A DNA stretch of 64,000 bases from Iphione sp. A-MEVVRFRX5 (Eukaryota). Each line of letters starts with the position of its first letter. The first letter of the stretch is position 1. The stretch covers positions 81,964,001 to 82,028,000 of the forward strand of contig OZ320316.1 in assembly GCA_976226885.1 (NCBI GenBank). Reading direction: 5' to 3'. Positions 5,677 through 48,230 of the stretch are shown piece after piece. Under the pieces are notes generated by a model. The model was not told where the DNA came from. It saw only the letters and a list, made by a program, of their open reading frames with translations, and did no database searches. The position numbers and the translations under genes are program-made.

Positions 5677-8301
5677 TTATTCCTATGTTTATGATTAGCT
5701 GTTACATTGACATAATCCATTAGCTTTCATTTATTAGGGTTGAGGAAGCAGGTGAAATGACGTTGACAGCCATCGTAGCTGCCTCACTGCCTTAGTACAG
5801 GTTCATAACTCCGCTGTTACATGTCTGTCCACAACTACGTCATTTCATCATGTCAACAGACTTCACCATAGGCATCTATACATGTACATAGGTACTCTTC
5901 AGACCGACGGTACCGGAATCATTTCACTCGTGTATTCAGTTGATATCCACGACCACGACCAATGAAATCCTAAAAATGTGTTTGGAGCAGTTTATCGAGT
6001 TCACTTAGGAACAAGTTTGCTTTGCCATCGATTGGTTTTGAACAAAGTCCTACACACTGATACAAGGACGAAGGAGCTTGATTTATGGAGGAATATTACT
6101 GTTTCCTTCGTTTGGTACAGGGGTTTAGCATGTTCGGCCGCAGTAAGCCCGCGAGGCTAGCAAATCTGTCAACACTACTGCCCGTCATTCTCGATTTGCC
6201 CGCATACAAGACGACAACATGTACATAAAAGGATAAAAGTGATACATTGGGAATATATATTTCATCTCGGCGACGATACGCCGTGACGTGCTCTAGTAAA
6301 ACCCACTGGACGGACACTGGAATTCGATTTAAGTGGCGATATCGGAAGGCAGCATCATAAGAAACCATCAAGTGTCGTAGCGAACACAGATGACATTAAG
6401 AGGTAAGGTTGGTGCTAGCTGATGCGGCAGTAGCCATTCGCCGCGAGGGTGGTCCAGCCAGCGCCAACGCATAATTGGCTGTGCTGCTGCAAAGAGCTTG
6501 CGGATCGGATAATGATCAGTGCTAACCTAATGTAGCCCGTCAGTTTCATCTCGGCCAATTGAGGCGTTTCCCACGGGCCGGAAGGTGGTCTTTGCCTTAA
6601 CAGACGGGAAACGGGCGCTGCGACCCGCCTGAAGCCGTGGCCTTGCCAGCTCGCCCGGTTTATCACTGTCGGCTGGCTGGTCCGTCCTGCCCCAGCAGCC
6701 GGCAGCCAGCGTGCGCTAATGAGCCGTATTTCACATGCAAGGGGCTTGCCGTTACCCACCGTCTGCCACTCGCCACCACATAATTAGCGCTATCATTAGG
6801 CGTCTAGTCAACAGGCTAGAATGCCGATCATTCCCGTCAGGCCGAGACAGGGGCCTATTGGCTGGCTTGTTGACGGCCAGCAGGCGTCTCTCATAGGCTC
6901 CCACAATTCGCTGCTACGTATGTGGCTATATTACCAGTCTACTAAGGCCTCCGGAAGGGGGCTCACTCCCGCCCACCCACCTACCTACCCTCCCTCTGTT
7001 GCCCAGCTTGACCGCCGGGCCCAGTCGCTTGGAAGCCACCTGCAGCCGGATACGCCGGGAGTGACCATAGTTAGAAGCCACTACCAACGCTGGCGACAGC
7101 TACTGACGGTTTGGCAAGGTAGATCTGGATATCTAGCTTCACAGGCCGGCATTTCCATTGTTTGCCTAAAGGCGGTAGACAAGAACCGCATGCAGCATGC
7201 AAGTGACATTGGAACTTCCTTTGGATAATATTACCTCTGTGTGGACTCAAATACATTGATTTTTTTCGCCATTGTCTTTGGCCCTAAAAACGAACGCTCG
7301 TACGTAAACTTTCGACCCTGGCGACTGCCTGAAAGAATTACTGACAAAGAATCATATGTGTGGAGTACCTTGTTTCTTATTTGAAGGTTAGTTCATGCTT
7401 TGAAAGAACCTTATGAAATGGCTTTGGAATCCCCTGGTTATCTTAGTTGGCAGTGTCTAATTCAAATTGCCGCAATGTAAGTAGCTTTTCCATTACGACA
7501 ACGTTTTGTTTCGTCACCAAGTGTGACCACAACAGATTAGAACGGAGTATAAAGACCACTTTCGCCAATATTTGTGTAACATATCTTGGTATAAAACACC
7601 TCAAGGCAGATCTGATTCTCCCTCCTAACAAATATGAATAAAAAGCAGTTGGGTGTACCGTCACACATACAGCCGCTGCTCTTTTAGAAAATGATGCCAA
7701 TCACAACTTTTTATTCGCAGAGGTAACGTTGAGATAACAGCCATTTGCTTGAATGGCCGCTGCGTCTGCCGCACAGATGTGACCATTTGGACGGAAAAAA
7801 GTGGGCGGAAGGCTTGTCAAGGCCGCAGCCTGAAGCACACAGTGGTGCCAGTGGCGCCGCCCAGCGTCCTCAGACTCAGAAGTGTCACTTGTAAATTGTG
7901 GTCCACTCGAGGGTAAGCCGGCGGGTGCCTCCTGCTACGAACACATCATCGACTGTGGTCCGAAGCAATCAGAGGGCCTTCCGGGCTGTGCGGCCGTCTG
8001 CCACCAAGAAGGCAATTTATGCACGTTTAAGTGGATGCTGGAGTGCAGAAGTCATAGCTAACTAGACCAAATAAGACCCAAAATACAGCAGTGATTGCCG
8101 GAGATAAGCCCGGCGTCCATACCCCATTACACGACTGAGGAGAGCCTTTGGAAGGTTGTAAGAAACTATTAGCGATGCAGCTGTATTTTTGTTGGGCATA
8201 CGCTTGTATGAACATGGTTGTCATGGATACTGCAAAGATAGATATTTTGTATTTAAAATGATCAAGATGAGAATGTAGTGTAGTGTTTTTCTTTTCTGCA
8301 G

Positions 8302-8329
8302 ATATAGACCACTGACCTACTTTGGCGAG
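8302..8329 (+). CDS. MGAT1: Probable MGAT1 28-nt micro-exon, (x)YRPLTYFGE
   Basis: Strong acceptor gtttttcttttctgcag and donor GAG|gtaata. It is open in one register and ends in phase 0, matching both stem exons. There is no homology proof beyond the phase fit and splice signals. Confidence 0.6.
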
Positions 8330-11300
8330 GTAATAGATTGCTAGCGATGTTCTCTACCGCATACAGTTTCATACGTGCGTGGGTAGATCTCCGACAGCAA
8401 AGAAGCTGATATTCATTGTTCTGTAATTATCCATGCTGTTTGATGTGTTTGCACGGTGTTTCAGACCGCTGTTTTTATGAGCCAAATTCAGAGGCCATCT
8501 CCGAACAGCATGAGCAAATCTAGTTGATCTCGGATGACGAAAAATGTAGTCAGTACTTCAATACCGAAGCCTATTAATATTCAATAGTCTTTTACAGTTC
8601 ACCATTGTAAATTAATGATGTGTCAGTCCAGCCTGGAATACAAAACGAACAGGCTAATGTGGAAAACGTGAATGGATTCTTCCTTTTCACTTCATCGCTT
8701 CGACACCAGCGCTTCCTCATTTGAAAGTCAGCTGTAGAATTCAAGCCATTCCTTTTTGCTGTTTTCCCAACCGGATAGCAAGATATAGTTATACATGATA
8801 TGAGCTAGTTTGCTTAAGATTCCCTCACCTCCGAGCTTATGCACTGCTAAGTAGGCTCAATGTATAATAAAAAAAATCATACAAAAGGGTTTTTTATATT
8901 GATGACCTAAGCATCTTCACAATGTGCATGTTTCAAGAGTTAACAAAGAGGACATTTCATGTAACCTTGATAACTTACTTCCCAAGTTAGTAGAACCATG
9001 ATATGAATGGATGGGGCCAATGCATTCGTATTTTCCCTAGCCAAAGGCAAGTGAAGCGTATCATTAGAGTAGCTCATTCACTCAAGTCTGACATAATTAG
9101 CATTCGTTTCTTTCTCCCTAACGAATCATATGCGAGTACATACTGAACACCCGAAACCCGTAGTGAAGAAAGCTCATGTCTGCCCCACGTATAGGCGAGT
9201 TATATTTTTTTCTTGTTCGAAGCTGCTACTCCAGCGTACTCCCAACTGACTAGACTGCGACGGTAGAAAAAAAAGTAATTCAGACCTCATTCGTCCTTAC
9301 TTTGTCCTATCAGGAAAACTAAATAAAGTCCGTTTATTTCTCTTGGCACCCGTGCCGCGCTGCCTGAGGGCCTCATGGCCACTTAATATGTGAATAGAGT
9401 CATGCGCCAGCTCGCCGTGGGAGGGCGTCTGCATCGAGGCGATGACGGCGGTTATTTTCCGCGCGGCTGGCCGCTGGATGTAGAGCGCCCACCCGACACA
9501 GTCTTCAAGGGCGATTTGCTGGACCGGCAGGGGCTCACACTAAAGAGATAACTCAAGAACGTTTACGAGGCTGTCCTGTGGTTGACGACCTAGTTGGATA
9601 GGATGGGATGGCATGAGAGTTCCGTATCCTCTCCACCTCCAATGGCCTTGGACTGCGCCTTTGGTCCCCAGTGCTTTGTGCCACGAGCAAACAGAGGGGA
9701 AAAGCACAGAAATAAGGGATGCAAACCGTTAGCTTCTTGGCTTCTCCAGCGAGAAATGACACGCAGCTGTTTTGCATTACGAGCGTTCTATCCAAAGCGA
9801 AGTCGTCTGGATCGGTACTTGTCATTAGCCTCTCTGAAATCGCACCGCCTTAAAACCTGTTCAGACTTTCCTTTGAATATCACGAGCACCAAAAAGGATC
9901 GTTATCTGCCATTGATGCTGGATTGTCCTGTCCGGTCGCAACCTCGCGGAAAAACTCCGAATGCATTGACAATTTTGTTTGTTCTCCTCACAAGAATTCC
10001 TCCACAGAACCTGTGCTTTTATTGATTCTTCAAGGTTCACAAATGAATGCGTTAAAGGAGATCGGCCTTAATGTTATCATGCAAATTAGGAGGGTATAAT
10101 GAACTAGGTTATCCTTGAGGCGTTCTCCGGCTGCCCTCCCTTGACGCTGGGCTCCACTCGCTAGTAGCTGTTGCCCCCTCATTTAAATACTAATGACACC
10201 ACTGTGATATTTCAAGCGCAGCGCAAAACGGATCAGAGACGGATATAACTTGTGGATCTCCCATCAAATATCGTCGGCGATTACCGCCCGCCACATTTTC
10301 CGGGGATGATAACCGTGACGCCTCTCGTTATCATGATATATTCTACTTTAGTTAGACTGTAAGGAAGGGAGTGAAATTGGACTCGTCGCCTCTCGAGTGG
10401 GCGTGGCTCACTTCATGGCAAAAACCTCAACAAGTTGCTGCATGCCAAAGAAAGTTGGTCTAACAGTACTCATTTAAACACATTCTCTATAGTTAGAAAA
10501 CACAAACTGCAATTCCACCACACAGACAGATACGTTTAACCAGTACCACCAAGATATCGCTCAAGCAGTGACTCATCAAAAACTATTTTGTTAAAAGCCG
10601 AACACATACACTTCTGTCCTGTGTTGTTGTGGCTTTTGTATGACGTCTACTGTCGAGATAGGCCATGCAGACAATGGTGCATCCACATTGGTTATTACCA
10701 TAAGATTACGTTACGATTTGTCAAATCGGATGGCCTATATTTCAGAAGTATTCATTCGTCCCACAATTCTTATTATTCTGTCTATATTCAATGCTAGGTA
10801 TATCTCTTCTGTTTTCTCCGCGAGAGTTTCTTGTTTCCAGGTACATTTATTATGATAGTACATGTCCAATGTGTACATTTTGTATTCCTAAAATGTTTCC
10901 ACATACATGTGTATATATCTCTATAGATACTGATTTAACTGATAGTTCCTAGCCGAGACTTAGTTGCCTTCAAAGCTAGACCAACAAGAGGAACTGTTTG
11001 TTCCTGCTTTTGAAACAGACAGTGTCGTATTCCAATTTTTGAAAAAACAGGCGAAAGCCTCTCTTAATGATGCGACCGTGGGCTTCTGGCTTCAGGTGGT
11101 TGCTGCCAATAAAAAAAGTGTCATATTCCATGTAAGTGGTTATGACAATAGAACAATAGTTAGGTTGTAAATACCCAAGTACGTGGCTTGCAAAGCATGA
11201 GACAGACTGAAAGACAGACGGACAGGCACGCGACATATTGTGGCCTTTCTTCATTAAAAAGTTTTAGAAAACTTAAGTAGGAGTAAAATTCCAGTTTTAG

Positions 11301-14300
11301 TTCTGAATATCACTTGACGCGCCAAAAACAATATACATATATGTATTTCTCACATGAACGTATTGCATAGCAATGTCTTGAATAAGTTGTTGAAAGAAAT
11401 AAACATGTTAATCGTATCGTGCACGTGAAAAATATTTTTAAATATTGTGTTAATACTATTTGAATTACCATTCCTTGTACACATTTTATTTCAGCTCTTA
11501 ACCTTTTAGGTGATCCAGTAATGAATTATATTTTCTTCATGGTGTTTTTCCCAGTCCCTACTTTCATAATAGATTGTCTTGTCATTTGCAGTTGAGAGAA
11601 TATTATGTCCCTTTTCAACATTCAATCCAGATTAGGTGTCATGTACTGGTCTTCTGTTAACGATCATGGCCATCAGCTGCCGAGAACGTTCCTTGCAATA
11701 CGGTCACATAGATTACAGTCCTATGTGTTTAATGATTAATTTATCTTGCAGTTATCAAGAGAAAGATGCTCATGTATGGATTTGCATTTCCAGGTTTCTA
11801 CAGAGACTGGTCATTGTCAGTGCACATAGTTAGCTAAAAGGTGTTTTCGTTTCTCACCGTGAAGCATGCTGCAGTATCTCATTGTCCCTAGTCCTGCTTT
11901 CTTTTTATTTGTCCCTCGTAAAGGATTTCTGTAATGTGTTTGAATATTGTTTATTGGTTGTGCTGTTTGTGGCTAACGGCATGCTGTTTGGTATCTCCAT
12001 ATATATATACATGTAACTTCTATTCACGCTTTCGTCATCTTATCATCCAGAGTTCGGTGTAAATCATTATATTCTAGCCCTTCCTTATATCCACCCAAAA
12101 ATAGTTCCGTTGGTAGATAATCAAGGAAGCCCCCCACCCCACAAATAGGATATTACCCAAAGCTTTGAGACCAATGTTGGCCCGGCAGAAGTGTTTTAGG
12201 CCTTCCACACAGCCCTGTCAGATCAAACACATAGCCATGCCAACTGCGCAGTGAAGAGCTTTTGCCATGGCCCGTACTCGGCATGATGCAAGTCAGTAAT
12301 CGGCGGCTGATGAATCCCGCTGTTTGTCCGCAGACCGACAGTGATGTCATCCAGCGCCATCTGGAGGAGCTTGAGAATCGCATCAGTGAACAGGTCGCTG
12401 AGCACGAGCGCCTCCTGCGCGAGCTTGAGTCAGTCCGCGAGAACTTCCAAAGCCAAATTTTCAAGGTCTCTACGAAAAGTGAGTTATGCCTACTTTTCCT
12501 CTACCATACCATTCCACGTGACAATTTTTCTGTTTTGTGCTGTTTTGTTTTTTAAGTGTAATGTTTTGTAAACATGGGCATTAAAGCGGTCACGAGGTGA
12601 GTACTTCTGAAATGGAATGCATGATCAGATTCATGCTAGTACGTAACTGAAATAGTACGGCAAGTTACGTGTTTCTCGCTCCCGTCAGAACAGGTGAGTG
12701 TTCGGAATGCCGTTGTATCACACCATTTTACTATTTCAAGTCAGTTTTGCTTACGTTGTCATGATGACACTGAGGCATGTCAACCCCGTCTTGATGGTTT
12801 TGTTATGCTAGTTCCAAGCGTTTTTGTTATGTTGCTGACGTGTTGTCGGTCCTGCTCCCTGCATTATCACTGCCATGAAAAAAATGCCTTGCTAGCAGTT
12901 CACAGTGGCGGTGTTTAGGAAAATGAAGCCACACGTTTCAGCATTTTCTTCTTTGCCAGGCATTTCAAACGGATTGCCAAAGTGTTATGAGATCGATTGG
13001 CCGCTGCAAATCACAGCCCCACTGTTGCCAGCTTTTATCACATGCAAAACTGCCGCCGGTGCTATTTCAGATTGAATGCATTTTGCTTCCCAGTAGGGAT
13101 GAGAGCCTGACACCTGGAACATTGAATGCGGGATTCACAGCGAGCGCATCGGAACATGGAGATGTATGGCACTTAAGCATGCTGTTTGGTTGTGAGTTGA
13201 ATTCAGCGTCAGCTGGTGCGTGTTGCTGACGATGTTTCCTCTCTGTCATCCTGTCAATGCAGCCACGGGCCCTGAACGGGGGAGATCTCCAGACTCAGCT
13301 TAACTATCTCGAGGAGAGTATACGGCAGCAGATCATTGCCAACGAGCATCTGCTCACTGACCTACAAACTTATAGGAAGCTGCTGCTTCGTGAGTAACTC
13401 CCAACCCTTATTGGTAGTACGTGTTGTTGTTCGGTGAGTTTGGACTCAAGTCGTGAGTGATGTCCGCCCCCCTCCCACTCCATCTCCGTTTCAATTGATC
13501 TTGTTTCAGCCAGCTTTCTTTCTCATTCAAGTATGTTCCACCAAATGTTAGTAGTCGTGTTTCGTCTTGTGAGATCTTGTTGAAAGGTGATGACTCGATT
13601 TACTGTGCGTTTTTTTGTTCTGTAGCATGAGTCGTATCTGTTAGACAGCTTACACAATATAATTATACATTTATCTTTAATTAAAACTTCTTCAGATTAC
13701 CTTGGCCTTTGCCGCAGATTGTATCCCTCCCATGCAAGTGTTTTCCCACGAATACCTTCCACCTTGAGCAGTTCTAAATAGATGTACGTGTAAATAAATG
13801 TAGGTTATCTAAAAAGTCTTTCTTCTCTTCAGTAGATGTCTGTAATAGAGATTAGTGTTCTATGGTTTTAAATTGCGGCTTATTGTAGACATCAGCACCC
13901 GTCCTGCGGCCCCAGCCCAATCGGCAGCTTGCATGCTACTGCCCGCTAATCTAGTCTTCCTCGCGCCATCTTTCTCAGGCGGCCGTCTCGGCTTACAAAT
14001 ACATCGCGCCGCGTCCTGACGGCGTCCTTTTTAACACTGGACGCCGCCACTTTAGGGCGAGTGTTGATGGCAGCAGCCTCCATTAAACGTCGACCAATCA
14101 GCGGTGCAACTTTTGCTGGGTGGGGCCATGACAGATGAGTGCAGCTCCTGCCTGCTCAAATAATTACAGTCTGTCGTGCCCGGTGCTGATTGATTCATTC
14201 CTCTCGTTTGCCAAAAGTCGCTCGTCAAAAGTTTGTGAAGCATATTTTTTTTATTTTATTCTCTCGGACTCTCCTGTCCCTCGCTAAACCTTGGGCATCG

Positions 14301-17300
14301 ACAGACAGGTTGTGGTGGGAGCGTTACCCCTCTGTTGAAGCCGCGTGCAAGCTTTGATTAACAGAACATGAAGAGGTTATTCCTTTTTGCTTTAGTCCCA
14401 GGGTGAACACAGCTAATAGGTTACCGGTTAGCTTACTGACCCTCGGAAAAGGCACTTGACGGGAATCCAGAGGCCAGTCCCCGTTGGGAGATGGCGTTTA
14501 GAGTAGTAGTTGTCCTGGATGACATGGTACGGGTACCTTATATGTTTATGTCACATCAAACAATTACCCTACATTTTTGTCGTCACAATGTCATGATCTA
14601 AGGAGAACATTCATCGAAGCTTGTGGCCGTATGAAAGGTATGTGGACACAAGTCTTTAGGTCTAATCAAACTAGTGCCTCAAACAACCTTTACATTGTCG
14701 TTAAATTCTTTTATCAGATAAAGAGCTTTTGTGTACATTAATTTAGATAGTTTTCCTCATTTCAAAAAACCAGTATTAATTTTAATTTATCTGATTTTGT
14801 CTTGATTTCGTTGCCTATCTATCGATTATATATGTTAAGTCTCTTTTTTCAATCCCATCGCTTTCTACTTTAGCTGGGTATTCCATCAGATCACACACTA
14901 AAGCGCTGTTCGCGGTTAATCTGTGACCAGTCATGAGCTAATATCTACTCAGGAAAGGCGAAATACGGTCGCCTGTGTACACAGACACACAACCGGGTCA
15001 AAGTTCTACCATCCATCCATCCATCTATCTTGTGAATGGCCATTCAGTTCCAATTATCATGTGATGGTCATACGTCTGTATGGCACACCTCCCTTATTGT
15101 TACCATGATAAAAGACGCGTAGCGTGCATCCAGCCTTGTGGATGCTGGAAGTATTAGCTACTACAGTCCTTGCCATTTCTCAATATCCGTTGGTCGGATG
15201 CTCGGGCAGAAGAGGCCTATTAAATAAATGATAATTGACGACCGCCTTTTCAAAGGAGGCGTCCAGCCACATGTAATGTAGTTTGCGTATATAAAGAATT
15301 GGGTTATCCCCAGGGAAGGAATAGGTTCCTGGCAGCTCTATTGTCGTATTCCCGTCCGTACTTCACAGTGGGGTAATTAAGAAGTTGCATGCGTCCCTCT
15401 AGCGGAACCAGTGAACCACCTTTTTATGTTTGACTGCACAAAAGAGGGACTGCATTAATCTATCATAAAGCCATGGTAAAGATGATGTGCAAAAGTAACA
15501 AAATATTTTCCACGCAGTGTGGATTTGATACGATTATGGAAAGAAAATTCAATTTAAAAGCGATAGAAAAACACGCGTCTCTTATAGGCTTTCTCGGATG
15601 CTGATTGAAATACAGTTGTTTTACCTTACCGTAGCCAACTGTTCGCTTGAGGAAAAACTCATGTAATCAATAGTAGCATTTCTTACAGGCAATGTGGTAT
15701 TTCTTATGTGTGATTGAATGTTCGTGTGGTCCTATAGCCATATGATTTCCTGAACAAAACATGTCTGTCCGTTCCCTTTTTGCCATTGCTACTTTCCTAG
15801 AGACGTATTCGGGCCTTTGAAGAATAATTACACATTTGATACTAAAACGTGATGACAGAATTCAACGGAGAAAGCAAGCAAAAATCCCAATAGGCAAAGT
15901 TAATGATTGTGGACGACAAGAAAGCTTACGGGCTCTCTTTGTACGCCCTTTTCCCATCATGCGGAGACTCTTTTGTCGAGACGGTGGAATCTTTGTCGCA
16001 GCGCACCGTGTCCTGGTCTTTGAAATCACTCTTCCGGCTGCGGCATTATTCAAGTCAGCCGCCGCCGCCGCAGTGGCTTCGTTCTGCGGCGGTTCACTTT
16101 GAAGCCTCATGGCTTCACCTTTCCCATCACTGTTGTCATTGCTGACGGCGTCCCCGGGACATTGCACAAACCCGAGTTCAAAGTGGCCAGAAGCCCCGCG
16201 CTGTCTGAGCGCCTGGCGTTGGGGGGAAGGGGGGGGGGCTACTTTCCTTTTTCGGCGGTGGCGGGCTTGGTGGGCCTACCTCTTGGGCGCTTGCTTCAGC
16301 TCATTTTGTCTTCCGGTATGCGCATACGGCAGCAGAGACCATCAACATCAAAGGCGACACAGCTAGATGGCTGGATGTTTGGGTTGTTTTTTGTTGTTGT
16401 TCTCACTCAAGACGTGATGGGCATTTGAGCAAATCCTAGAAGAGTTTGAATGCTCTAACATATGGTACCCTCCTTTCCCTCGTGCTGATACCGCCGTGCA
16501 TTTTTTTATGTACTCAAAGCAGCTCTGTGACAGTTTTTGGACATACCACGTTCAGGTACACTTTTCAGCTTCGTGACTGTCCCTTCCAGGCATACATGAA
16601 ACTAATTGAGAACTCGGCATTGCATGGTAACATTTATTGCTTAGCGGGCGTACAATAAGGAAAACCCGGCGCCAGCAAACGCCGTTCACACGAGAATGCT
16701 ATTTATCCCTATCCCATATCATGCTGTCAAGGACATTCGTTATGCTTAACTATATATATATGATACCAGTGAGTGTCAAAGGCTGAGGTCTGAATGAGTT
16801 ACCCTTTGCCTGAGATATGTTACGGCCTGCTGATAGATACGGTTTACACCCGACTTGCTGGCTTAGTGCTGGAAGGTGTCAATGTGACGGATCGCCTTCG
16901 GTTGAGTTTCCGCCATCCGATCAGACGGCACCGCGGAATTCTTTTGTAGTGTTCAAGGTGACGCGCTTCTTACCGAGCTGACGACCGCTCCGCCACGGCG
17001 GCTCCCTCTGATCAACGCCGTGCATCGCTCCTTTCATCTCCCTGTGAAGATCTATTAAGCTTCTGCCTACACGCCACTCAGCATATCCAACCAATCGCTC
17101 CGCCTCCGCGGCTGCCGTCTCCCGCGGCCCTTTCATGTACGTGGTGGCCCGCTGTGAGTTGCTCGAGTGATGTGTCCTACTGTCTCTGAATAATTTCCAT
17201 GTGGGGTTGCCCTCCCCTACACTCATCACCTCACCTTTCATTCGTCTGCGATAGAAGTTGCGACCAACACTCCAAAGATGCTGTTTGCCATAACCCTCCT

Positions 17301-20300
17301 TCAAAAGCGAATAGTTGAATGCAGGACATTGTTGTTCATTTGTATGATTTCTTAGCGCAGTGTCCTCAGGGATGGAGTTCTACACTACAGCCACCAGCCT
17401 GCTTTCACAAACCCACGTCTATTTTCAAATGAAATCAGGAGTGTTGTCTGGGCCAGTCGTTTTTATCAGCCTGATTAACAAAGCACTCGGTGTCATTAGG
17501 ACTTTCCCTGAAATGAAAGGAAAAGAAAGGCTTAATACCAATTGACTAAATTCATAATGCGGCAATTTCTTGTCTTCGTGTTTCCTGCAATCAACGACGA
17601 TAGTTTGTTCAAATCTGCAATTTTTCTTCGGCGAAAATAAAACCTTTTATTTTGCTGGAAATTTCAACTGTATTTTTAGTGTACTGAGCTCCTTTACTGA
17701 AAGGATAATAATGAAGGATAAATGCGTTAATGTCTAGCATAACTAATCTCACAGATGGCTATAAAGATCAAATTATATGGATAATAGTATTTTGAATCAT
17801 AAGTATTTATATATCCGCTCTTTAAAATTGTTCCAATACATTCAGACTTAAGACCATATTTGTTGAGTGCTCATACTTTTTCTGAGCCGTGTATACCAAA
17901 GTGGAAAACTTTACGTTCGATATACACTGCATACCCTCAGAGTCCATTTGTGCTATACTTCCCGCCATAATGTAGCCTAGGCATGATATATTTAATAGAG
18001 GTGATGTCGGGTGTGATGTTGTCTTCATTTATCAGGTCTTTGGATTGTGTAGAATACCATCCCGTGCTGGCCTGCCTCCTCTTCCCTTCGCCAGCGCCCT
18101 TCCGCCAATTACACAGCAGAAACTTCAATGGCCGCTGGAGTGCCGCGCCAAGCACCAACAGCAATCTACCAAGGGGAAACTTAAGGAGGCGAGATCCGCG
18201 CGCTGGCTTCCAGCTAAGAAAATCGCAGCTAACATAGTTTGCTGTGCTAAGGCTGCCTTGCGTTTGTGTCTCCTGAGAGAGGAGGAATGGCTCGGCGTAG
18301 AGTGGGAACGGCCTTTACTTAAATCTGTTGTGTCGAGTTTTACAAAAGCAAGACATGCATACTGCGGTCAGACAAAGCCGCTTCCTAACGGCTTTCATTT
18401 GCATTCGAATCACTGTGTACCAAGCACAGCATCAGCTTCATCAGCATGGCCTCCAGTCATTACCTAATTGCTGATGAATGGTTGTAGAATATTTTACAGA
18501 AGACGTATATGTTATTTTAACGTATTTACTTTTGGAGGAAATGCCACCACACCCTCTTCTAAAAGAACATGCATTCTAATGCCTCGTTCTGCCGGTAGTC
18601 CATGTACCATGAGAGCCTTTTTAATAGTATAGCCAAGTCTTTGGTCGATCCGTTGGAGCGCAGTTTTGTGATGGTGCCCTCCGCTTCCCAGGTCGATGCA
18701 CAGATGATGTCTTGCCTGTTTGACATTCAAGCTACCTCGATAGAAATTGCTGTGAGCATGCAAAGCATAAATGGCGGGTTTCTTTTTCAGATGGCAAAGA
18801 ATAGTCGGTTCCCAGTGTAGACGTACGTGTCTCTCTACCTGTACTTGTTCGTCTCTCCGAGGAGAAAGAAGGCCCAGGCTTTAATTCGCGTGCGGCATAG
18901 TTTCTTGCCATCTATCCCCCGACCTCGCCCAGTCATGACGCACATATTCATTACCCCCAATGGCATCACGGGAATAAGCATATTCAGTGACCAATCAGCA
19001 TTTCACCTCAGTGGTCGTCGCGACTTCGCCCGAATATTACCGGTTCATGCATTTTCGGCAGTAATATGCTTTAATGGATTTTGTTATCACACGGACACAT
19101 GCCAGCGCGTGTACAATTTATCCTTTTATGGCCATGGCGTGAGAGCGATTCGGAGCTCTGCCCGCCTGATAAGGCCTGTCACCTCACAACTGCACAGTCT
19201 GAAAGCCTCCAGTTAAGCAAAGCCGACGAAAGACGCTTAGGAGGAGGTTTATAACTTTATTGAAACTGTAGTCAGTCCCCCTCCCCTTTCATCTAAATGA
19301 CTCAACAGCTATGGCGCCACGCCCCGAATGTGAACTAGCTTCCGCCGAAAGCTGTCGGTTTTGCTCAACCAGCAGCGAAATGCACACGAGAACAAACAGA
19401 TTGGAAGTTTCTGCTTTAAGTGAGAGCGACTGGCGCGTCCAAAGTCATGATACGATGTCTGCAGCAGTTGTCATGCAAAGGATTTCTCAGAAGTCGTCTG
19501 ACAACGGCCCGTCACATACCTAGTTATGGTCGACTGAAAGGGTCGATAGTATTAGGTGCCACTGCTACCTGCTCTGCCTGTTTTGCTTTGCCTTTCAGTA
19601 TCGAATTACCCGAATACATTCATGTTTTATCAGTACGTTGCAAATAATTCATAGCTATATCACTGCCGAGTCCATGAATTAGCTGTAGAAATTTCTTCTG
19701 AATTGCAAAGTATTTGCAAACAGATGTTCAGTGCTCTGTTATGCAACATAATTGGATGCCATGCCGGGAGTTTGCAATAGTCTGCTTGTGTTAGGTTTTC
19801 GCAGGGAATTGTTCTCTGTAGTGCTGTGAACATTCAGGGATAAGAATGTAAAGAGAACTAGACGACAGTCTGAGTATGTGTGTATGCATATCGATGGTTG
19901 GGAACCATATTGCACAAGGCTGAGTGTTACTGTACTAGTTTGGTTTTTATTCTGGTTTAACACGATAGGTATTTGAAATGATAATCAACCTTACTGGAAA
20001 TGTCGTTTAGCCTGCATAAGTTGCCATCTTGGATTTCTAGTTTCTCATGCATCATAAATTCTAATGAATATTTTAAAAGTAATTGGTCTGTGCAGTGCTT
20101 CTAAATCATGTCAGAACAGGCGTACAATAAATGCGTATTCGCTGTAGGCAAAGAAGTACAAAGGTTATCTGGGTAATGGGTATAAATGGCATATGTCAAA
20201 TACAAAACAGGGAACTGCTGATTAGTGTGGATTATCTTGAAATATTTCCCGCTTCCTAATGACAGATGAAGAGGAACCAGAGCGGCCTTTCGGGTCCGTA

Positions 20301-23300
20301 TTTCCCCTTGTATGACATTCACGCCCAAGGGGTTCAGACGAAGACTTCGTGCAAGCTTCTTTCCATTACTGATATTAAATTTCAGTGCGAATAGCAACCG
20401 TAATCTCTTTGCGTTTTGTTGGCCGGGCTTCTTTGTTTATGGGTGGTGTCTGATAGCGAACACGAGGCACCGCACTGCATTAGATTCGAACATGGAGCAT
20501 CGCTCCCGCACCACTCGTTCCACTGAATCTCTCCCCATTCATTTGTCAATTTTTGTCAAAGGCGTCAATATCATTCGTCTTGCTCGGTGGAGGATAAGTG
20601 CAGGAAATTGCATTGCTAGACATGTCTTGATCACTTGCAATTACGCGATGCCTTCTGGTAATCAGTCAGATTCTTTGGGGAATCCTGCCTAAATAGTCCC
20701 TTTCACATAGCAATCTAGCACCCACTAGTGATGACCTATGTGGTGATCTTCAGATGCCTTCATTCACACATTTGTGCGGATTTTGAAATGAAACGATTAC
20801 ATTTTACCCGGAGCAAAGAAAACCTCTGTCTGTGACGACGTTTGATCAGGTAATTAGAATAGACTGAAACAAAGGTGAATGACACCAATTCCAAAACGGT
20901 TACGTCTGCGCGCAGGCAGTAAGTATAGGAATTCGATACGGCGTGTACAATGCAGAAAATTAAGGGAATGAATTGCCAAGAAAAGTTTATTCCGTTTCCC
21001 ACATTGCACTCGATCGCAGGCGGTTGCTCGGGAGATGTTCTTTCTCTTGTGCGCAGATGAAAGCAAATATCCGATTAGCTCTGTGCTTTGTTAATAATTT
21101 CAAGCAGATGAGTTGTTTTGTTTATGAAAAGCTTCCCTCCATGGGAACATATCCAGGTGGCGCGGATACACCTTGAAGGGCAGCATGTACACTCAGGAGA
21201 CACGGCCGTGAGCGCTGCACACAAATTTTCTCTCCTCGGTGAGGTTTCTATGTGCCCATGGTTTACTATAAGGTATCACTGTAACCTCATCGGCTGATTG
21301 CATGTTACGGCTTCACATGAAGAGCAACTGTCACAGGACCTGAACGAAATGTTGTCGGTGGTGGTGGCTGGTTGGTTTCAGGAGGCAGGGGGACCTCCAG
21401 GGAAAACCGGGCCTAACCCTTTCCACCCCGAGCCGTCTGTCCCTTTTCACTGGAGGTAACCAGGTTGCTGAGGCCCCTCCAACTGCCTGTGCGGGAGCAT
21501 GCTTCGGGATGAATGAGTCAATAAGGCGGCCGCCCTCTCAGGAGAGGAAAAAGGATGGCGCCCGTGCCTGACGTCACCCATTACTTCCAGCAGGGTATGA
21601 AAACGCACTGCCCACCACCTCATCACCCATTAAATCAGGTTTTATCAGTGGAATTATAACAGCCGGTCGTCTTTTTTAAAGAGAGAGCAGGCAGAGGCTG
21701 CACAGATGTAGAAATCCTCTTTTTTGCTCTCTGACACCTCCACAATCGTACATACACGACAAAAACTTGAACGAATGCCACCTAAAAAGGCAAGGGGTTG
21801 TCGTGGATTTGCTTCATGACACATGCTTGAATTACAGTGTGAAAATGATAGGAAACCCTCCAAGATCCGGTTAATTTCTTTTTTGTCTATATTATTCATG
21901 AAACGTGTGCAAAATTAAAGATAAAACGGTTCAAAGTAATCCTTTCACTGTGGAAATCAGAGATAGTGCGTCTAGGGGGAGCTCACTTACTCTTGATTTT
22001 CTTCTTGTTTTCTACATTTTTAACAGTAAAATTCTTTGTAAAGAAACGTGTTTCTCTGGGTCGTTACAAAAGAAATGGCACATGGAATTCTTGTGTTTGT
22101 GTCCTAGAAAGGATCGTGCTTTTTTGTGATCCTATCACGTCCCCAACGGAACTACTGCCATGGATTTATTTTCAAAGCGCGTGAAAAGAGTGCTTTGAAG
22201 GTGAAACTGGCGTACAGTTTCTTGCCTGTTGGATTCTCATTACCTACCTGTACAGTACTGTTCTTGTAAGGACTTAGGATGGGACGGCAAAAAAGGTCAT
22301 AAAGCTCGTTTTTACACATCGCTCCGGCACAAAGGTCTTACGTTGTAGCGGCGTTAAGTGAAGCAAGCTCGCAACCTTTCCCGTCCGTAAAAATATGACA
22401 GGCATCCTAGAGTGAAGTATCTTTGTATCGAACTAAAATACATGTCCGCCATGACCGTCGTTCTGTTGAAAAGGAGCAGCGTCACTTCGCTGAAGAGAAT
22501 AATGATAGAGACGTTGAAAGAAAATATTGAATTACAACCACCTTAGTTGCTGTTAAGTTAGAAAGAAGCCTCTCCTCGCCAGCATCAGATCAATGTTAAT
22601 TAATATGGAGAAAACATATACATGTACGTTATTGTGTGTAGTATTTCATGAAAGATAAGGTATGGAAGGCAGTGTTATATTTCGTCACTGACATGTGCCG
22701 GCAGAAATTTAACTTAAAGCCAACGAAATTCACAGACGTTTTGTAGATTGGTACGGATGACGTTGCTAACGTTCTCCGTAAAATACGTCGCAATGACTAA
22801 TGATTAGAGCTCCATTCCTTTTTTTAGTATGATATTTCCTTGTGGAAAATAACTTGAATAAGGAAGTGCTATCAATTCACATTCAATTCATAACAGTAGG
22901 AACATGAATTTACTATCAAAATTATCGAACGTTTTGATAAAGACCATTCCCTTGCGTCTCGTCTCAAGTATCCGGCGTTCTGGCACATACCGACAATCAT
23001 CATACGTCATTGGTTTGAAGTTGTGTGAAATTCATGCCGCTGACCTCTTACATATCCGGCATTTTAAGAATGAATTATGTATTTCTATGTTGCCAAGCCT
23101 TCAGACATATGTGACAACAGGGGTCCTCTTATTCAGTGCTTAGGGCGTTTACCTTGTGAGCCCCATTTATTAATGCTGCCCTGTAAAGGTGCGCCATATC
23201 ATAATACGTGTAGTGAGCACATGTACATGTACATGCTGGTAGGATTCAGCTTTGCTTTTCAATGAATTGTTTTGAATGAATGTCCGTTTAATGATAGCGA

Positions 23301-37000: not shown

Positions 37001-38465
37001 AAATTCGTCCTTTCACACAGGTTACTTCCAAATGACAAGGTTTGCGCCTCGCTTGTAGCTTATGCCCAAAGCGAGCTTTTTCGAATGAGCGGCATCAAAC
37101 GATGGCTGCTAAGACACGAAATGTTGAGTGTGTAAACCTCTGACCCAGTCACATTCCAGTTATTAGTTATCATACCTTCTATGTGTTTATGTATGTTGTT
37201 TTTCCTATATATTCGCACAAAAAGGTGCATGTAAATTCTTGCAAAAGTCATGTTGCTTTTAAAAAAGCCTATTGCATCTTATTAAAACTTTTTTGTCGAC
37301 GAAGGTATGGTTAATATTCCAACGAAATAATTCGTCTTTCCTTTCGTTTCAGGGGTCAGTTCTACGAGAAGCATCTCAAATTCATCAAACTTAATGACAA
37401 ATTCGTGCCTTTTACCCAGAGAGATCTTTCATACCTCAAGAAGGTAAGGTATATTCTGTATACTTGCACTATCAATTAAATGGACAAAACCGGCAATAAG
37501 ATAACAGGTGTGATACATATATATTCCATCTTTCGTCCTGATTTTGACGTTTTCCAGAGTGGACGACAGTTATGGAACAAATGGCAATCTTCTGACTTGT
37601 AAAACGATCAATTTTTTTCTCATCTTTATGCTGATCTCATACCATAATCAAGCCACTCGGCTAGTTCAGCTTAGACGCCTATGAAATATTATAATGTACT
37701 TGATTTATCAGCAATATTACTGGTGATATACTCCCCATACCAACTAATTATCGGTTTTCCTTACATAACATCCTTATGCTTTTGGTGTTTGGGTTTTTTG
37801 TAGGAAAACTATGATGAAAGTTTTGTACGGACGGTGTACAGTGCGCCACTGTTGACGGTGAACCAGGTGCTCTCAGGTGCTATATCGGAGCACCGAGTCG
37901 TGCGGGTACACTACAGCGACAAACAGGCCTTCAAGACACAAGCCAAGCAGCTTGGTATCATGGACGACCTGAAAGTAAGCATGATTAGCTCGGGCCGGAG
38001 CACATGTGCCCACAGGGAGCACTCTCACGGCGACATACATGATTGATACAGCTAGGACGCCTGTGCAACAACGGACATTCATTTCGAGATATGTAGCATG
38101 TCTCCTAGGTGTTTTGGGTGCAACAAGGTGCTCCTGGGGTAAAGCGGATGGTTCGAAGGCACATCGACCACTACGACAGATTAACACACGGAAATCGAAC
38201 AGACCTGCTAAATTTGTCTATCTCACATGCGTGCAGCTATATACCCTAGTGTAGTAATGAACGATTAAGAGTTGATGTAATAGATAATGAAATTTGGTGC
38301 AGTAGAATTGCTTCCATGGTGATAACCTGTTGCGGTTTGCTTGACTTGCAGTCGGGCGTCCCGCGCGCGGGCTACCGTGGTGTGGTCAGCTTCATGTTCA
38401 ACGGCCGGCGGGTCTTCTTCGCCCCGCCCCCCGATTGGAAGGGCTACGACAAGAGCTGGAACTAG
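8302..38465 (+). CDS. MGAT1: MGAT1 alpha-1,3-mannosyl-glycoprotein 2-beta-N-acetylglucosaminyltransferase (GnT-I, GT13), multi-exon, 5'-partial. Join: 8302-8329, [12334-12478 OR 13263-13389], 23443-23620, 24927-25035, 25777-25915, 27680-27814, 30039-30129, 31800-31904, 37353-37443, 37804-37974, 38352-38465
   Basis: The hand-spliced translation gives [12 protein letters not shown]...[18 protein letters not shown]...[15 protein letters not shown]...[16 protein letters not shown]...[10 protein letters not shown]...[13 protein letters not shown]...WPKTFWDDWMR...[11 protein letters not shown]...[14 protein letters not shown]...[17 protein letters not shown]...GYDKSWN*, which is collinear with the known GnT-I sequence. 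All introns are GT-AG and the phases are consistent. Confidence 0.97.
12334..12478 (+). CDS. MGAT1: MGAT1 stem exon A (coiled coil [48 protein letters not shown])
   Basis: Acceptor tgtttgtccgcag, donor AAAA|gtgagt. 145 nt, phase 0 to 1, with a heptad pattern and GC3-rich codons like the catalytic exons. Joins 23443 in frame (A+GG = Arg). Confidence 0.85.
13263..13389 (+). CDS. MGAT1: MGAT1 stem exon B (coiled coil [42 protein letters not shown])
   Basis: Branch-like gctgac, pyrimidine tract, acceptor tgcag and donor CTTC|gtgagt. 127 nt, phase 0 to 1, paralogous to exon A. Joins 23443 in frame (C+GG = Arg). Confidence 0.8.
23443..23620 (+). CDS. MGAT1: MGAT1 exon: end of stem and start of catalytic domain ([24 protein letters not shown])
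   Basis: tttgacag acceptor, AA|gtgcgt donor. Matches GnT-I IPILVIACDRSTVRRCLDKLL. Confidence 0.95.
24927..25035 (+). CDS. MGAT1: MGAT1 exon ([36 protein letters not shown])
   Basis: ttgcag acceptor, CAG|gtaact donor, SQDCGH motif. Confidence 0.96.
25777..25915 (+). CDS. MGAT1: MGAT1 exon ([46 protein letters not shown])
   Basis: tgttag acceptor, GAAG|gtaaga donor, [12 protein letters not shown] motif. Confidence 0.96.
26633..26788. other. Assembly gap (N run)
   Basis: Run of N. Confidence 0.99.
27265..27306. repeat. (TATG)n microsatellite
   Basis: Imperfect tatg repeats. Confidence 0.9.
27680..27814 (+). CDS. MGAT1: MGAT1 exon ([45 protein letters not shown])
   Basis: tttcag acceptor, CCAG|gtacgg donor. 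Completes the EDD (DxD-type) motif and contains CVSAWNDNG. Confidence 0.97.
30039..30129 (+). CDS. MGAT1: MGAT1 exon ([30 protein letters not shown])
   Basis: ttttcag acceptor, AAAC|gtgagt donor, [10 protein letters not shown] motif. Confidence 0.97.
30940..31024. repeat. (TA)n microsatellite
   Basis: Pure TA run from about 30978 to 31024, with a degenerate left flank. Confidence 0.97.
31800..31904 (+). CDS. MGAT1: MGAT1 exon ([34 protein letters not shown])
   Basis: ctttcag acceptor, GCAA|gtaagg donor, WDDWMR and CIRPEISRT motifs. Confidence 0.97.
32238..32256 (+). promoter_or_regulatory. CTCF-like motif
   Basis: TGCCCACCAGGGGGCACGC versus the consensus TGGCCACCAGGGGGCGC. Motif match only. 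Confidence 0.45.
37353..37443 (+). CDS. MGAT1: MGAT1 exon ([30 protein letters not shown])
   Basis: cgtttcag acceptor, AAG|gtaagg donor. Matches [14 protein letters not shown]. Confidence 0.96.
37804..37974 (+). CDS. MGAT1: MGAT1 exon ([15 protein letters not shown]...[10 protein letters not shown])
   Basis: ttttgtag acceptor, AAA|gtaagc donor, GIMDDLK motif. Confidence 0.95.
38352..38465 (+). CDS. MGAT1: MGAT1 last coding exon ([37 protein letters not shown])
   Basis: cttgcag acceptor, TAG stop at 38463-38465. The C-terminus is nearly identical to that of GnT-I. Confidence 0.97.
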   Translation, partial: SGVPRAGYRGVVSFMFNGRRVFFAPPPDWKGYDKSWN

Positions 38466-45439: not shown

Positions 45440-48230
45440 CATGGGTATTACGTTTACGAGATCAAAATATTTAAATAGTGGTGGTATAAAACATGTTTAG
45501 TTTCTTGACATTCACAAGCGCACCAGGGTCATTTCGTTTACCAATAGAAGTCCTTTCTACTAGAAGACCATGTTTTATAAACTCCACTAAATGCTGTCTC
45601 TACAGTATGTGGTAGGAAGGAACACACGGAGTATATTGTACTCCTTGAATTGAGGTGTCTCAGATCAGAGACCATTTTACCAGTGATTTCTTTCAGTGGC
45701 ACAGAGTCTGACAGGTTAACAGGTGTTTCTTCAGAATCATGAGGTCCTTGCTCCTTTTGATCTCCACTGCAGGTTCTCACTCCGCTTTTTTCTAGCATGT
45801 ACATGATAAATAGTCGAAGACTGGGACCACAAACACCTTAAAGAGCCTCACTGTGTCCCTACAGGGTAACAATGGGGTGAGTCTGGCTAGGCCCAAGGAA
45901 CGCTGCCTGGCCTTCCTTTTCACCCCCATCACCATTGGTTTCCAGTTTAGGCTATCGTCGTCTTTAATATAGCCAAGGAAAGCAGCCACACTGAGTTTCT
46001 TTATTTTGGTCATCGAGATTGACAGATCAAGATCAAGGCAACGTGCCTTCCCAGATACCATGTAGAACATCTTATCAGGGTCAAGGATGAGGCCAAGTTC
46101 AGCACACCAATTGGTTACATCATTTAAGCCCCTCTGCAGCTTCAACTTTAGACTTAATATGTTTGTAGCTTGATACTAAATGGTAGTCATCTGCATACAT
46201 TGAAGTTTGGGAACTGACAAGGTTTGGGGGCATTGTGTTCATCACTAGAGTGAACTCCAGGGCGCATACGAAGCTTCCTTATGGAACCCCCTGCTTCACA
46301 GGTTTGGTATCTGAGGAAGTGCCATTACATGCTGCAAAGCTGGTGTCTTCCCCGCAGCTAGCAGCTTGCCCAATCAACAGCCGGAGTACCAACACCATAG
46401 GCGATTGACCACTAGATCATGATTTACAGCAGCAAATGCCTTGCTCAGATTCAGGAAGACGGCACCAAAGTGTCTATCATGATTAAGGGCATCATAGCAA
46501 TCCCTCAAGATTACCGCTACTGCAGTGTTGGTCCCTCTATCGCTGTGGAAACCGTGTTGTTCAGCTACCATCTGTGCATGGATCTCGAGATGGCTAGTGA
46601 GGTGTATATGTACAAAAATTTCCACAAATTTACTCATACCATGAAGAATCGTTATGGGGTGGTAGTTCTTATTCATATATGTTGGCTTTTTCTTACTAAC
46701 TGGGTTAACCCTGCAGGTTTTCTAGACAGCAAGGAAGACACTATTTTGAAGCGATTGGTTTAAAATCGACCACACAAGGTCAATGCAAACAATGAGAGAG
46801 TCTCCGAAAACAACCATTGGAACTCCCCGAATACCTGAGGACTTACGGGGGTCTATTTGATTAATGAGCTTTCTAAGCTCTGTAGGAGTAAGCATGGGAA
46901 GCTCCCAACCACTATCCATGGGCAAATTGACCAGGGCATCTGATTGGACATCAGACCTCAGCCTTGTCATAAAACCAGCTGTTAAGCACAGTCAGGTAGT
47001 CTGTCACTGATAACCACTGGTCCCCCTCCTTAAGGATTACATCGGTGGGAGTGAATTTTTGCCCAAAACATTACTGCCGTCACATTCTAGTAAACCCTGG
47101 AACCCTTGAAGTGATGTAATTTGGCCTTAATGAGGTTGCTTTTCGCGTTCCTAACTAGGGTCCAAACCACTTTCCTGTAGAACACTCCTATGTAAAAAAA
47201 CAACACAGCCCATTCGCTTGTGAACTTTGAAAACGTATTTACGATTGTAATAGCTTCCACTCATTTGTGGTGTTGACTCGCCCTTTTCTTACAGGGCACA
47301 GTGTCCCGGCCGCTACTCTCATCCCTTCTTCCATTTCACTCCAGCATTCAGTGGCAATAGTACGTTAGAAAGGACTGGCAGCCCATACCCCCTGTACGAT
47401 CTCTCTTCATACTCCAGTATGTGGTGACTCTTCCTTGAATTTTTTTCCTAATGAACACGGGGCAATGATCACTGGCAAAGACGTCTAGGACACCAGAGTC
47501 ACAAACATACATTAATTTAGAAAAAAATAAAATCAGTACATGACTTGCAGGTTTTGCGTACCAGTGTTGGCTGTTCAAAATACTGACCCAATCCTGGGAG
47601 GCGCAAGCTGGATTCAAGCTTACCTTTGTTACGACCATTATTAACCCTCCAGTTGATGTTCAGGTCGCCACCAATCACAATATCACATCCAGATGGAATA
47701 ACACCACGACATCCCTGAAAATAATCACATACAATGTCAACCTTTATTGGAGGAGGACAATACCATACACACATGGATACATGTAAGATTTACGTATGAA
47801 CCAAGAAAATAAACTACATAATAATATGTATGATAACTCTAATCGTATTTGATTTAAGAGACATGTTGATAATTGAGCCAAACGGTTCATATGTCTGTTT
47901 CAACTGAGTTAAATAAGATAATGGATTGCGATGATTGCTATATAGCTCTCTACATACTCTCTATCTCATCACAATCCAACTTACGATCACATAGTTCCTC
48001 ATTCGTACAGGCTTTGTCCACATACACGGCTGTACCAACGCCTCTTACTTTTGCGCTAGAGAATTTGTCATTCCTGTGTAGTGCACCAGAGGGTAGCTGT
48101 GGCAAATCAGAGTCAATCGACGGCGATAGCCACATCTTAGACACTCTTCTGGCGAGAGACCATGAGGGTCTGGACATCACCTAGCTTCGGTAGCAAGCTC
48201 CTAGAATTCCAGAAGATGATCTCACGTCTC
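45440..48230 (-). mobile_element. Degraded CR1/L2-type LINE ORF2 (APE endonuclease + reverse transcriptase)
   Basis: Motifs occur in the expected order on the minus strand: NSRSLLPK, WLSPSIDSD, RGVGTAVYV, YCPP, GGDLNINW, SDHCPVF, KSSGIRG, NYHPITIL, EQHGF, FLNLSKAF, GVP*GS, YADD (46185-46200), NWCAELGL, FLGY. Many stops and frameshifts. Confidence 0.92.

Follow-up and report, generated by a model that had tools for sequence, protein, structure and literature searches.

Can a single animal gene supply one Golgi glycosyltransferase with either of two stalks through the choice of one exon over another? This question is raised by the MGAT1 gene in a 64,000-nucleotide (nt) stretch of the genome of Iphione sp. 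A-MEVVRFRX5 (GenBank assembly GCA_976226885.1, contig OZ320316.1, positions 81,964,001 to 82,028,000 of the forward strand), which is referred to here as the window. Two exons on the plus strand of the window, designated A and B, each encode a luminal coiled-coil stem of GnT-I, the product of MGAT1. An earlier reading made from the letters of the window (the original prediction) had proposed that the two exons are mutually exclusive duplicates that serve one catalytic domain. Having followed up this proposal, we consider it very likely that A and B are old tandem duplicates of the single stem exon of MGAT1 and that they are spliced in a mutually exclusive fashion.

Exon A occupies positions 12334 to 12478 (145 nt; 48 codons plus one nt) and encodes the longer stem, and exon B occupies positions 13263 to 13389 (127 nt; 42 codons plus one nt) and encodes the shorter one, which has an ancestral look, with an intron of 784 nt (12479 to 13262) between them. 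Both exons are entered in phase 0 and left in phase 1, both have lengths of 1 modulo 3, and each is free of stop codons from its first base. The borders of exon A are the acceptor ...tgtccgcag/ACC and the donor AAA/gtgagt, and those of exon B are the acceptor ...tcaatgcag/CCA and the donor TTC/gtgagt, where the slash marks the splice junction. The coordinates, phases and GTGAGT donors given in the original prediction were borne out when the window sequence was read again, and its claim that the two exons align as paralogues with no gaps fared equally well. The A and B peptides align ungapped over 31 residues, with identities at 11 of 34 positions, and their BLOSUM62 local score of 54 was reached by none of 5000 shuffles of B (21.9 +/- 4.3). 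Among the 1345 stop-free six-frame open reading frame chunks of the window, A and B are each other's best match (runner-up score, 38), and a profile built from A orthologues matched a profile built from B orthologues with a probability of 96% (E = 1.7e-9). Exons A and B are clearly tandem paralogues of one another.

The reading frame restricts how the two exons may be used. When the frames were recomputed, joining A to B ended the frame at a TAA at positions 13301 to 13303, 39 nt into exon B, and skipping both exons caused the exon at 23443 to be entered in phase 0 and the frame to end at a TGA at 23551; the original prediction had stated both outcomes correctly. With A alone or B alone, the frame remains open through nine GnT-I exons to the stop codon at 38465, and the junction codon with the exon at 23443 encodes Arg in either case. 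Since inclusion of both exons and inclusion of neither break the frame, only mRNAs with a single stem exon encode the enzyme. The further claim that either exon alone yields a full GnT-I holds for the downstream part of the gene, where the frame is open to the stop, and was not confirmed at the 5' end, where the upstream exon is unsupported (discussed below).

How the splicing machinery would choose between the two exons is a separate matter. The A-B intron measures 784 nt in the window and 653 to 2009 nt in the relatives described below, which makes steric exclusion between the splice sites unlikely. The donors of A and B are of the ordinary U2 type. No convincing inverted repeat was found around the pair (positions 11334 to 14389), where the only candidate was an AT-rich 24-nt pair with 71% complementarity, and no Rfam family matched in positions 8000 to 24000. 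The introns around the pair are heavily diverged among species. For the protein products, the reading-frame rule suffices to account for exclusivity.

The homologues of the gene were sampled by an exhaustive search with one catalytic exon and by a word-index search with the closest full-length match, giving several hundred MGAT1 homologues, and the gene loci of relatives were searched with the stem peptides. The original prediction had suggested that both exons be sought in related genomes, and A and B were found intact in five others, representing three phyla (annelids, a nemertean and a brachiopod). Among the annelids, Owenia fusiformis (locus L002) has A at 21352-21502 (151 nt) and B at 22917-23046 (130 nt), Ridgeia piscesae (L003) has A at 12330-12516 (187 nt) and B at 13767-13893 (127 nt), and Paralvinella palmiformis (L005) has A at 11246-11393 (148 nt) and B at 13403-13532 (130 nt). 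The corresponding exons lie at 8011-8161 (151 nt) and 9867-9996 (130 nt) in the nemertean Lineus (L006), and at 8537-8696 (160 nt) and 9350-9434 (85 nt, a shortened B) in the brachiopod Lingula anatina (L004). In all five genomes A lies 5' of B, the phases run from 0 to 1, the lengths are 1 modulo 3, and the splice sites are canonical. The donors of these exons resemble GTAAGT or GTGAGT, that of Paralvinella A being GTAGGT. The two length classes are also maintained, with B at 127-130 nt in five genomes and A at 145-187 nt.

Outside these groups, a single stem exon, likewise entered in phase 0 and left in phase 1, is present in Patella vulgata (121 nt), Saccostrea (121 or 94 nt) and Branchiostoma (115 nt). 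This exon is B-like in all three, and no second stem-like open reading frame was found within the Patella, Saccostrea and Branchiostoma genes. As the single-exon outgroups share the 0-to-1 phase, that phase is ancestral, and any tandem copy of such an exon would therefore have been frame-exclusive from the outset.

The scores among species separate the two exon types. For window B the score is 86 with Paralvinella B and 65 with Ridgeia B, versus 44 and 31 with the A exons of the same two species, and for window A it is 78 with Paralvinella A versus 51 with Paralvinella B. The A exons of Lineus, Lingula, Owenia and the window have mutual scores of 56 to 69, and the orthologous stem exons are 25-59% identical at the amino-acid level. 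In a label-swap test over nine species, three of which were represented by transcripts labelled by similarity, only the two trivial labellings of 512 reached the observed statistic. Within the annelids, the scores with Paralvinella and Ridgeia clearly show A to be orthologous to A, and B to B.

Discrete characters point in the same direction. One heptad 'a' position is Asn in every one of the five full-length B exons and of the three single-exon outgroups, and His stands at the same position in four of the six genomic A exons as well as in three further A-type transcript proteins. Ten residues past the core Asn, the five B exons all have a Tyr, which every A exon lacks. These characters agree with what would be expected if the pair had a single origin. 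The simplest history would be one duplication of a B-like exon that predated the split of annelids, nemerteans and brachiopods, in which case the molluscs either lost a copy or branched off before the duplication. Independent duplications may provide an alternative to a single origin.

Evidence that the two exons are used one at a time comes from the relatives. Exactly one stem is present in each of four transcript proteins from related annelid-like species, whose identity to the catalytic exons of the window is about 72-74% in every case. The stems of two of them (P0005 and P0152) are A-type, scoring 91 and 101 against A versus 54 and 67 against B, and those of the other two (P0151 and P0160) are B-type, scoring 109 and 86 against B versus 62 and 51 against A. 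The four proteins are 68-84% identical to one another and therefore represent four different species; P0160 shares 90% identity or more with a protein of Paralvinella palmiformis. In a maximum-likelihood tree built from the catalytic domain, the window grouped with the four transcript proteins, Owenia and Paralvinella, and the molluscs, nemerteans and brachiopod formed groups of their own, the support for the annelid grouping being weak (82/82). In RefSeq, isoforms X1 and X2 of Lineus (XP_064645732.1 and XP_064645733.1; P0270 and P0161) are identical save for the exchange of the A exon for the B exon, and the same is true of isoforms X1 and X2 of Lingula anatina (XP_013415076.1 and XP_013415077.1; P0271 and P0175). 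No isoform pairs were found within ten further 90% homologue clusters. Both exons have been conserved, a natural tandem double stem is absent from the 150 full-length homologues compared, and the core of the original prediction, namely that duplicated stem exons are used singly on one GnT-I, is supported by the conservation of the exons and by the relatives' transcripts.

Several points count against this interpretation. The use of both exons in Iphione is something that we infer from their conservation and from the relatives, and the RefSeq X isoforms of Lineus and Lingula are computed models. The gene model lacks its 5' end, since the first coding exon was not found in the window. When the six genomic pairs were labelled by position alone, 4 of 64 label swaps reached the observed statistic, two of which were trivial, and the similarity scores lend moderate support to the view that each exon type is orthologous across phyla. 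The core His is missing from the A exons of Paralvinella and Ridgeia, which have Asn and Gln, respectively. Finally, the acceptor of Ridgeia B has a poor pyrimidine tract, which makes the 5' boundary of that exon uncertain.

If A and B are mutually exclusive, what would the exchange of one for the other do to the enzyme? AlphaFold2, run with a small orthologue alignment, predicted a single continuous helix for each exon peptide, spanning residues 2-47 for A and residues 5-41 for B (predicted local distance difference test scores of 96 and 91, respectively). The two peptides share an a/d register of L/I/V, L, L, I/L/V, Q, His or Asn, L and L, followed by an aliphatic residue in A or Tyr in B, and the stem is predicted to have a coiled-coil pattern of five to six heptads with two polar core positions. 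The solved GnT-I structures begin beyond the stem. A buried Asn at an 'a' position, such as Asn16 of GCN4, sets the register of a coiled coil and its choice of partner, and the difference between A and B at the core 'a' residue thus sits where specificity is usually encoded.

The mechanism that we favor is as follows. Exon 1, which would encode the cytoplasmic tail and membrane anchor and end in phase 0, would be spliced to either A or B and then to exon 3 at 23443, and transcripts that contained both stem exons or neither would presumably be substrates for nonsense-mediated decay. Two enzymes would result, with a common anchor and catalytic domain and with stalk helices of 48 or 42 residues, whose cores would differ by His versus Asn at an 'a' position and by an aliphatic residue versus Tyr at a 'd' position. 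The likeliest effect would be that the stalk pairs differently, whether with another copy of itself or with further enzymes of the early or medial Golgi. The assembly of the enzyme or its position in the Golgi stack would then change, and its chemistry would not.

Other systems give some indication of what such a stem may do. Mammalian GnT-I and mannosidase II display 'kin recognition', in a system where GnT-I has one fixed stem, unlike the spliced stem of the worm. The stem of tobacco GNTI, which is the same region of the same enzyme, is likewise a predicted coiled coil with a role in enzyme-enzyme complexes: a nine-residue motif within it is needed for the formation of GNTI-GNTI complexes, and the tail, membrane and stem portion (CTS), when over-expressed alone, blocks N-glycan processing in a dominant negative manner (PMC10715278). 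The tobacco enzyme has one fixed stem, whereas the stem of the worm enzyme would be picked by splicing, and the tobacco motif is a short and probably disordered stretch inside the coiled coil whose homology to residues of the worm stem would be conjectural. A bolder reading, which we put forward as a possibility with the odds against it, is that the two stalks form orthogonal coiled coils, in which the buried His (A) or Asn (B) of the core 'a' position and the 'd'-position Tyr confined to B would lead each isoform to prefer partners of its own type or a distinct group of Golgi enzymes.

It is also conceivable that the two exons are alternative and their stems functionally equivalent, with both exons being kept through divided expression, for example by splicing regulators specific to tissues or stages. 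The stems do share a heptad core (L, L, I/L, Q, L, L) and a predicted fold of one helix each, and molluscs and amphioxus do with a single stem exon. Equivalent stems, however, would not be expected to maintain type-specific core residues across phyla, as A and B do with the Asn and Tyr of all five B exons and the His of four of six A exons, nor to maintain separate length classes, and we regard equivalence as unlikely, while giving it more weight than any other rival explanation. Considerably less probable is the view that Iphione uses only one of the exons and that the other is a silent or decaying duplicate, in effect a pseudo-exon. The annotations of Owenia and Ridgeia, each of which contains just one of the two exons, might be taken to favor this view, but in the window neither exon contains a stop and each is flanked by a pyrimidine tract with an AG acceptor and by a GTGAGT donor, the similarity of window B and window A to their counterparts in relatives (86 and 65 for B, 78 for A) is not expected of an unused exon, and the relatives' transcripts show both types. 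That both exons are normally included to give a tandem double stem, by way of a weak phase-0 donor inside exon A (AAG/gtctct, positions 12463 to 12471, cut at 12465/12466) that exists as originally predicted and would fuse A and B in one open frame, is scarcely credible, as this donor misses most consensus positions (the +3 purine, +4 A and +5 G) and has the GTGAGT donor 13 nt downstream, the relatives' A-type transcripts retain the tail of exon A beyond the cut, and two stem motifs occur in just 2 of the 150 full-length homologues, both of which are suspect models.

The two suspect models are from Paralvinella and amphioxus. The Paralvinella model (P0294, L005:10001-13532) starts in intron 1 and strings together A, a 42-nt filler (13234-13275) and B; the anchor exon, which lies near L005:2613-2663 and about 7 kb upstream of the start of the model, is missing from it. 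With a filler and no anchor exon, P0294 is an annotation artefact. In the amphioxus model (P0121, 516 residues), the whole N-terminus, consisting of the anchor and stem (about 105 residues), is present twice, and this doubling is probably an assembly or haplotype duplication that corresponds to no real protein.

The exons downstream of the pair, all on the plus strand, show that the gene in the window encodes GnT-I. Constitutive exon 3 (23443..23620) is entered in phase 1 and encodes a linker together with the first part of the catalytic domain (PVLVIACNR). It is followed by catalytic exons at 24927..25035 (match to Pfam PF03071, E = 4.4e-9), 25777..25915 (E = 6e-16), 27680..27814 (E = 1.6e-19) and 37804..37974 (E = 1.3e-9), and by others at 30039..30129, 31800..31904 and 37353..37443, which were assigned from the frame and the fit to homologues, as was the last coding exon with the stop codon (38352..38465). 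The downstream splice sites were picked by frame and by fit to four homologues, and all nine exons are bounded by AG and GT. With exon 1 excluded, the reading frame comprises 425 codons with A or 419 with B, and the proteins of relatives are 452-456 residues long.

The PF03071 (GNT-I) family matched in five of the exons tested, four of which singly exceeded the gathering score. The exon at 27680 matched the rabbit GnT-I chains 1FO8 and 2AM3 with E = 4.5e-19, versus 9.5e-9 for POMGNT1. An E-D-D (DxD-type) motif for binding metal and nucleotide sugar, VVE/DDLD, is assembled across the junction 25915/27680, the exon at 25777 ending immediately before its two Asp residues, and lines up with DDLEV in rabbit GnT-I. 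Compared with the MGAT1 homologues P0005, P0151 and P0152, all of which have the PF03071 domain, the nine catalytic exon pieces show 72-74% identity. An NCBIfam scan of two of the homologues gave no match, this library being built for bacteria and archaea. By these matches, the window gene is GnT-I/MGAT1, of glycosyltransferase family 13, and nearer to GnT-I than to POMGNT1.

The 5' end of the gene is a different matter. In relatives, the first coding exon is separate and exactly 96 nt long, encodes the initiating Met, a basic tail and the membrane anchor, and ends in phase 0. In Owenia, Ridgeia, Lineus, Lingula and Saccostrea it precedes the first stem exon by 1-11 kb, the distance being 2-11 kb where that stem exon is A. 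No such exon was detected in the 12.3 kb upstream of A by tblastn with the N-termini of nine relatives (PAM30 matrix), which gave nothing significant, or by a hydropathy scan, and the best upstream match on the plus strand of a hidden Markov model built from 26 exon-1 peptides, compared with all six-frame open reading frames of the window, had an E value of 0.73. The short basic N-terminus and membrane anchor of a type II protein were not found within the window. The true exon 1 probably lies beyond the start of the window, and the absence of the anchor exon, being due to the incompleteness of the window, is not evidence against membership of the GnT-I family. The original prediction had placed an upstream exon at 8302..8329 (plus strand, 28 nt) and a junction at 8329. 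As an exon for the initiating Met and membrane segment this candidate was rejected, given that the only fitting upstream ATG (7418) yields an N-terminus with no hydrophobic span, and the assignment of the 5' exon to these positions is probably wrong.

Some features of the loci lie apart from the exon pair. The Owenia annotation uses B only and omits A, and the Ridgeia annotation uses A only and omits B; neither omitted exon contains a stop, and the splice sites of both are usable. In Ridgeia, the opening part of the last coding exon (SGVGRVSYRGVITFMYN) recurs about 15-20 times at L003:26434-27689, at the gene's 3' end, with a spacing of about 64 nt, which represents either a tandem array or an assembly artefact. 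In Lineus, the end of exon 3 has a degenerate duplicate (LGVLVFSYSRVTVKRSMTQLI) with 62% identity at L006:11329-11391, about 130 nt downstream of the genuine exon. In Saccostrea (L009), two phase-1 donors at 3270 and 3297, 27 nt apart, set the length of the coiled-coil end, and in Dreissena and Mya an 8-residue insert that distinguishes isoforms (P0183/P0277 and P0195/P0278, respectively) alters the length of the same end. Bivalves vary the same stem by another route than the A/B exons. Within the window, several broken open reading frames are found on the minus strand at 45795-47789, downstream of MGAT1; one matches the reverse transcriptase family RVT_1 with E = 1.9e-6, just below the Pfam cut-off, and the segment is probably a decayed non-long-terminal-repeat retrotransposon. 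A simple repeat at 2400-2560 reads as (PPSL)n in two plus-strand frames and as (GREG)n on the minus strand.

Returning to the mutually exclusive use of A and B, the closest likeness is to be found in FGFR2, where the tandem-duplicated exons IIIb and IIIc are mutually exclusive, exclusivity is enforced by the frame, and the wrong forms are removed by nonsense-mediated decay. Pairs of the FGFR2 type consist of adjacent homologous exons with equal phases for which double inclusion or double skipping breaks the frame, and the MGAT1 pair is alike in all these respects. The segment that is swapped in the worm MGAT1 differs, however, in being the luminal coiled-coil stalk of a Golgi glycosyltransferase and not a ligand-binding or channel segment. 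The RefSeq isoform pairs of Lineus and Lingula, which have the same position, order and phases as the pair in the window and appear to be orthologous to it, are nearer still.

Among other animals, the vertebrate MGAT1 has a single coding exon, and Caenorhabditis elegans has three GnT-I genes (gly-12, gly-13 and gly-14). These genes encode the same enzyme with the same type II architecture as the worm MGAT1, but no splicing is possible within the coding region of the vertebrate gene, and the nematode duplicated the whole gene, whereas annelids, the nemertean and the brachiopod duplicated the stalk alone, by exon duplication. Full-text literature searches found no description of mutually exclusive exons in MGAT1 or of spliced glycosyltransferase stems; RefSeq already lists the Lineus and Lingula alternatives as computed models, for which no descriptive paper came to light. 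The splicing mechanism is an ordinary one, and what is noteworthy is that it acts on the stalk of the gatekeeper enzyme for complex N-glycans and that it is so deeply conserved.

As the gate through which oligomannose N-glycans pass to become hybrid and complex ones, GnT-I is an enzyme for which the role of the stalk in retention, complex formation and placement within the Golgi stack has long been argued from artificial chimeras and deletions. Two natural stalks on an identical enzyme, kept separate for hundreds of millions of years, make a clean comparison of isoforms possible. The findings also correct public gene models, in that those of Owenia and Ridgeia miss one exon each and that of Paralvinella wrongly fuses both. 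Should the A and B stalks prove to be orthogonal, splicing would send one catalytic domain to two distinct enzyme assemblies or cisternae. RNA processing would then set the entry to hybrid and complex N-glycans, as a form of splicing-programmed kin recognition that would predate the divergence of annelids, nemerteans and brachiopods.

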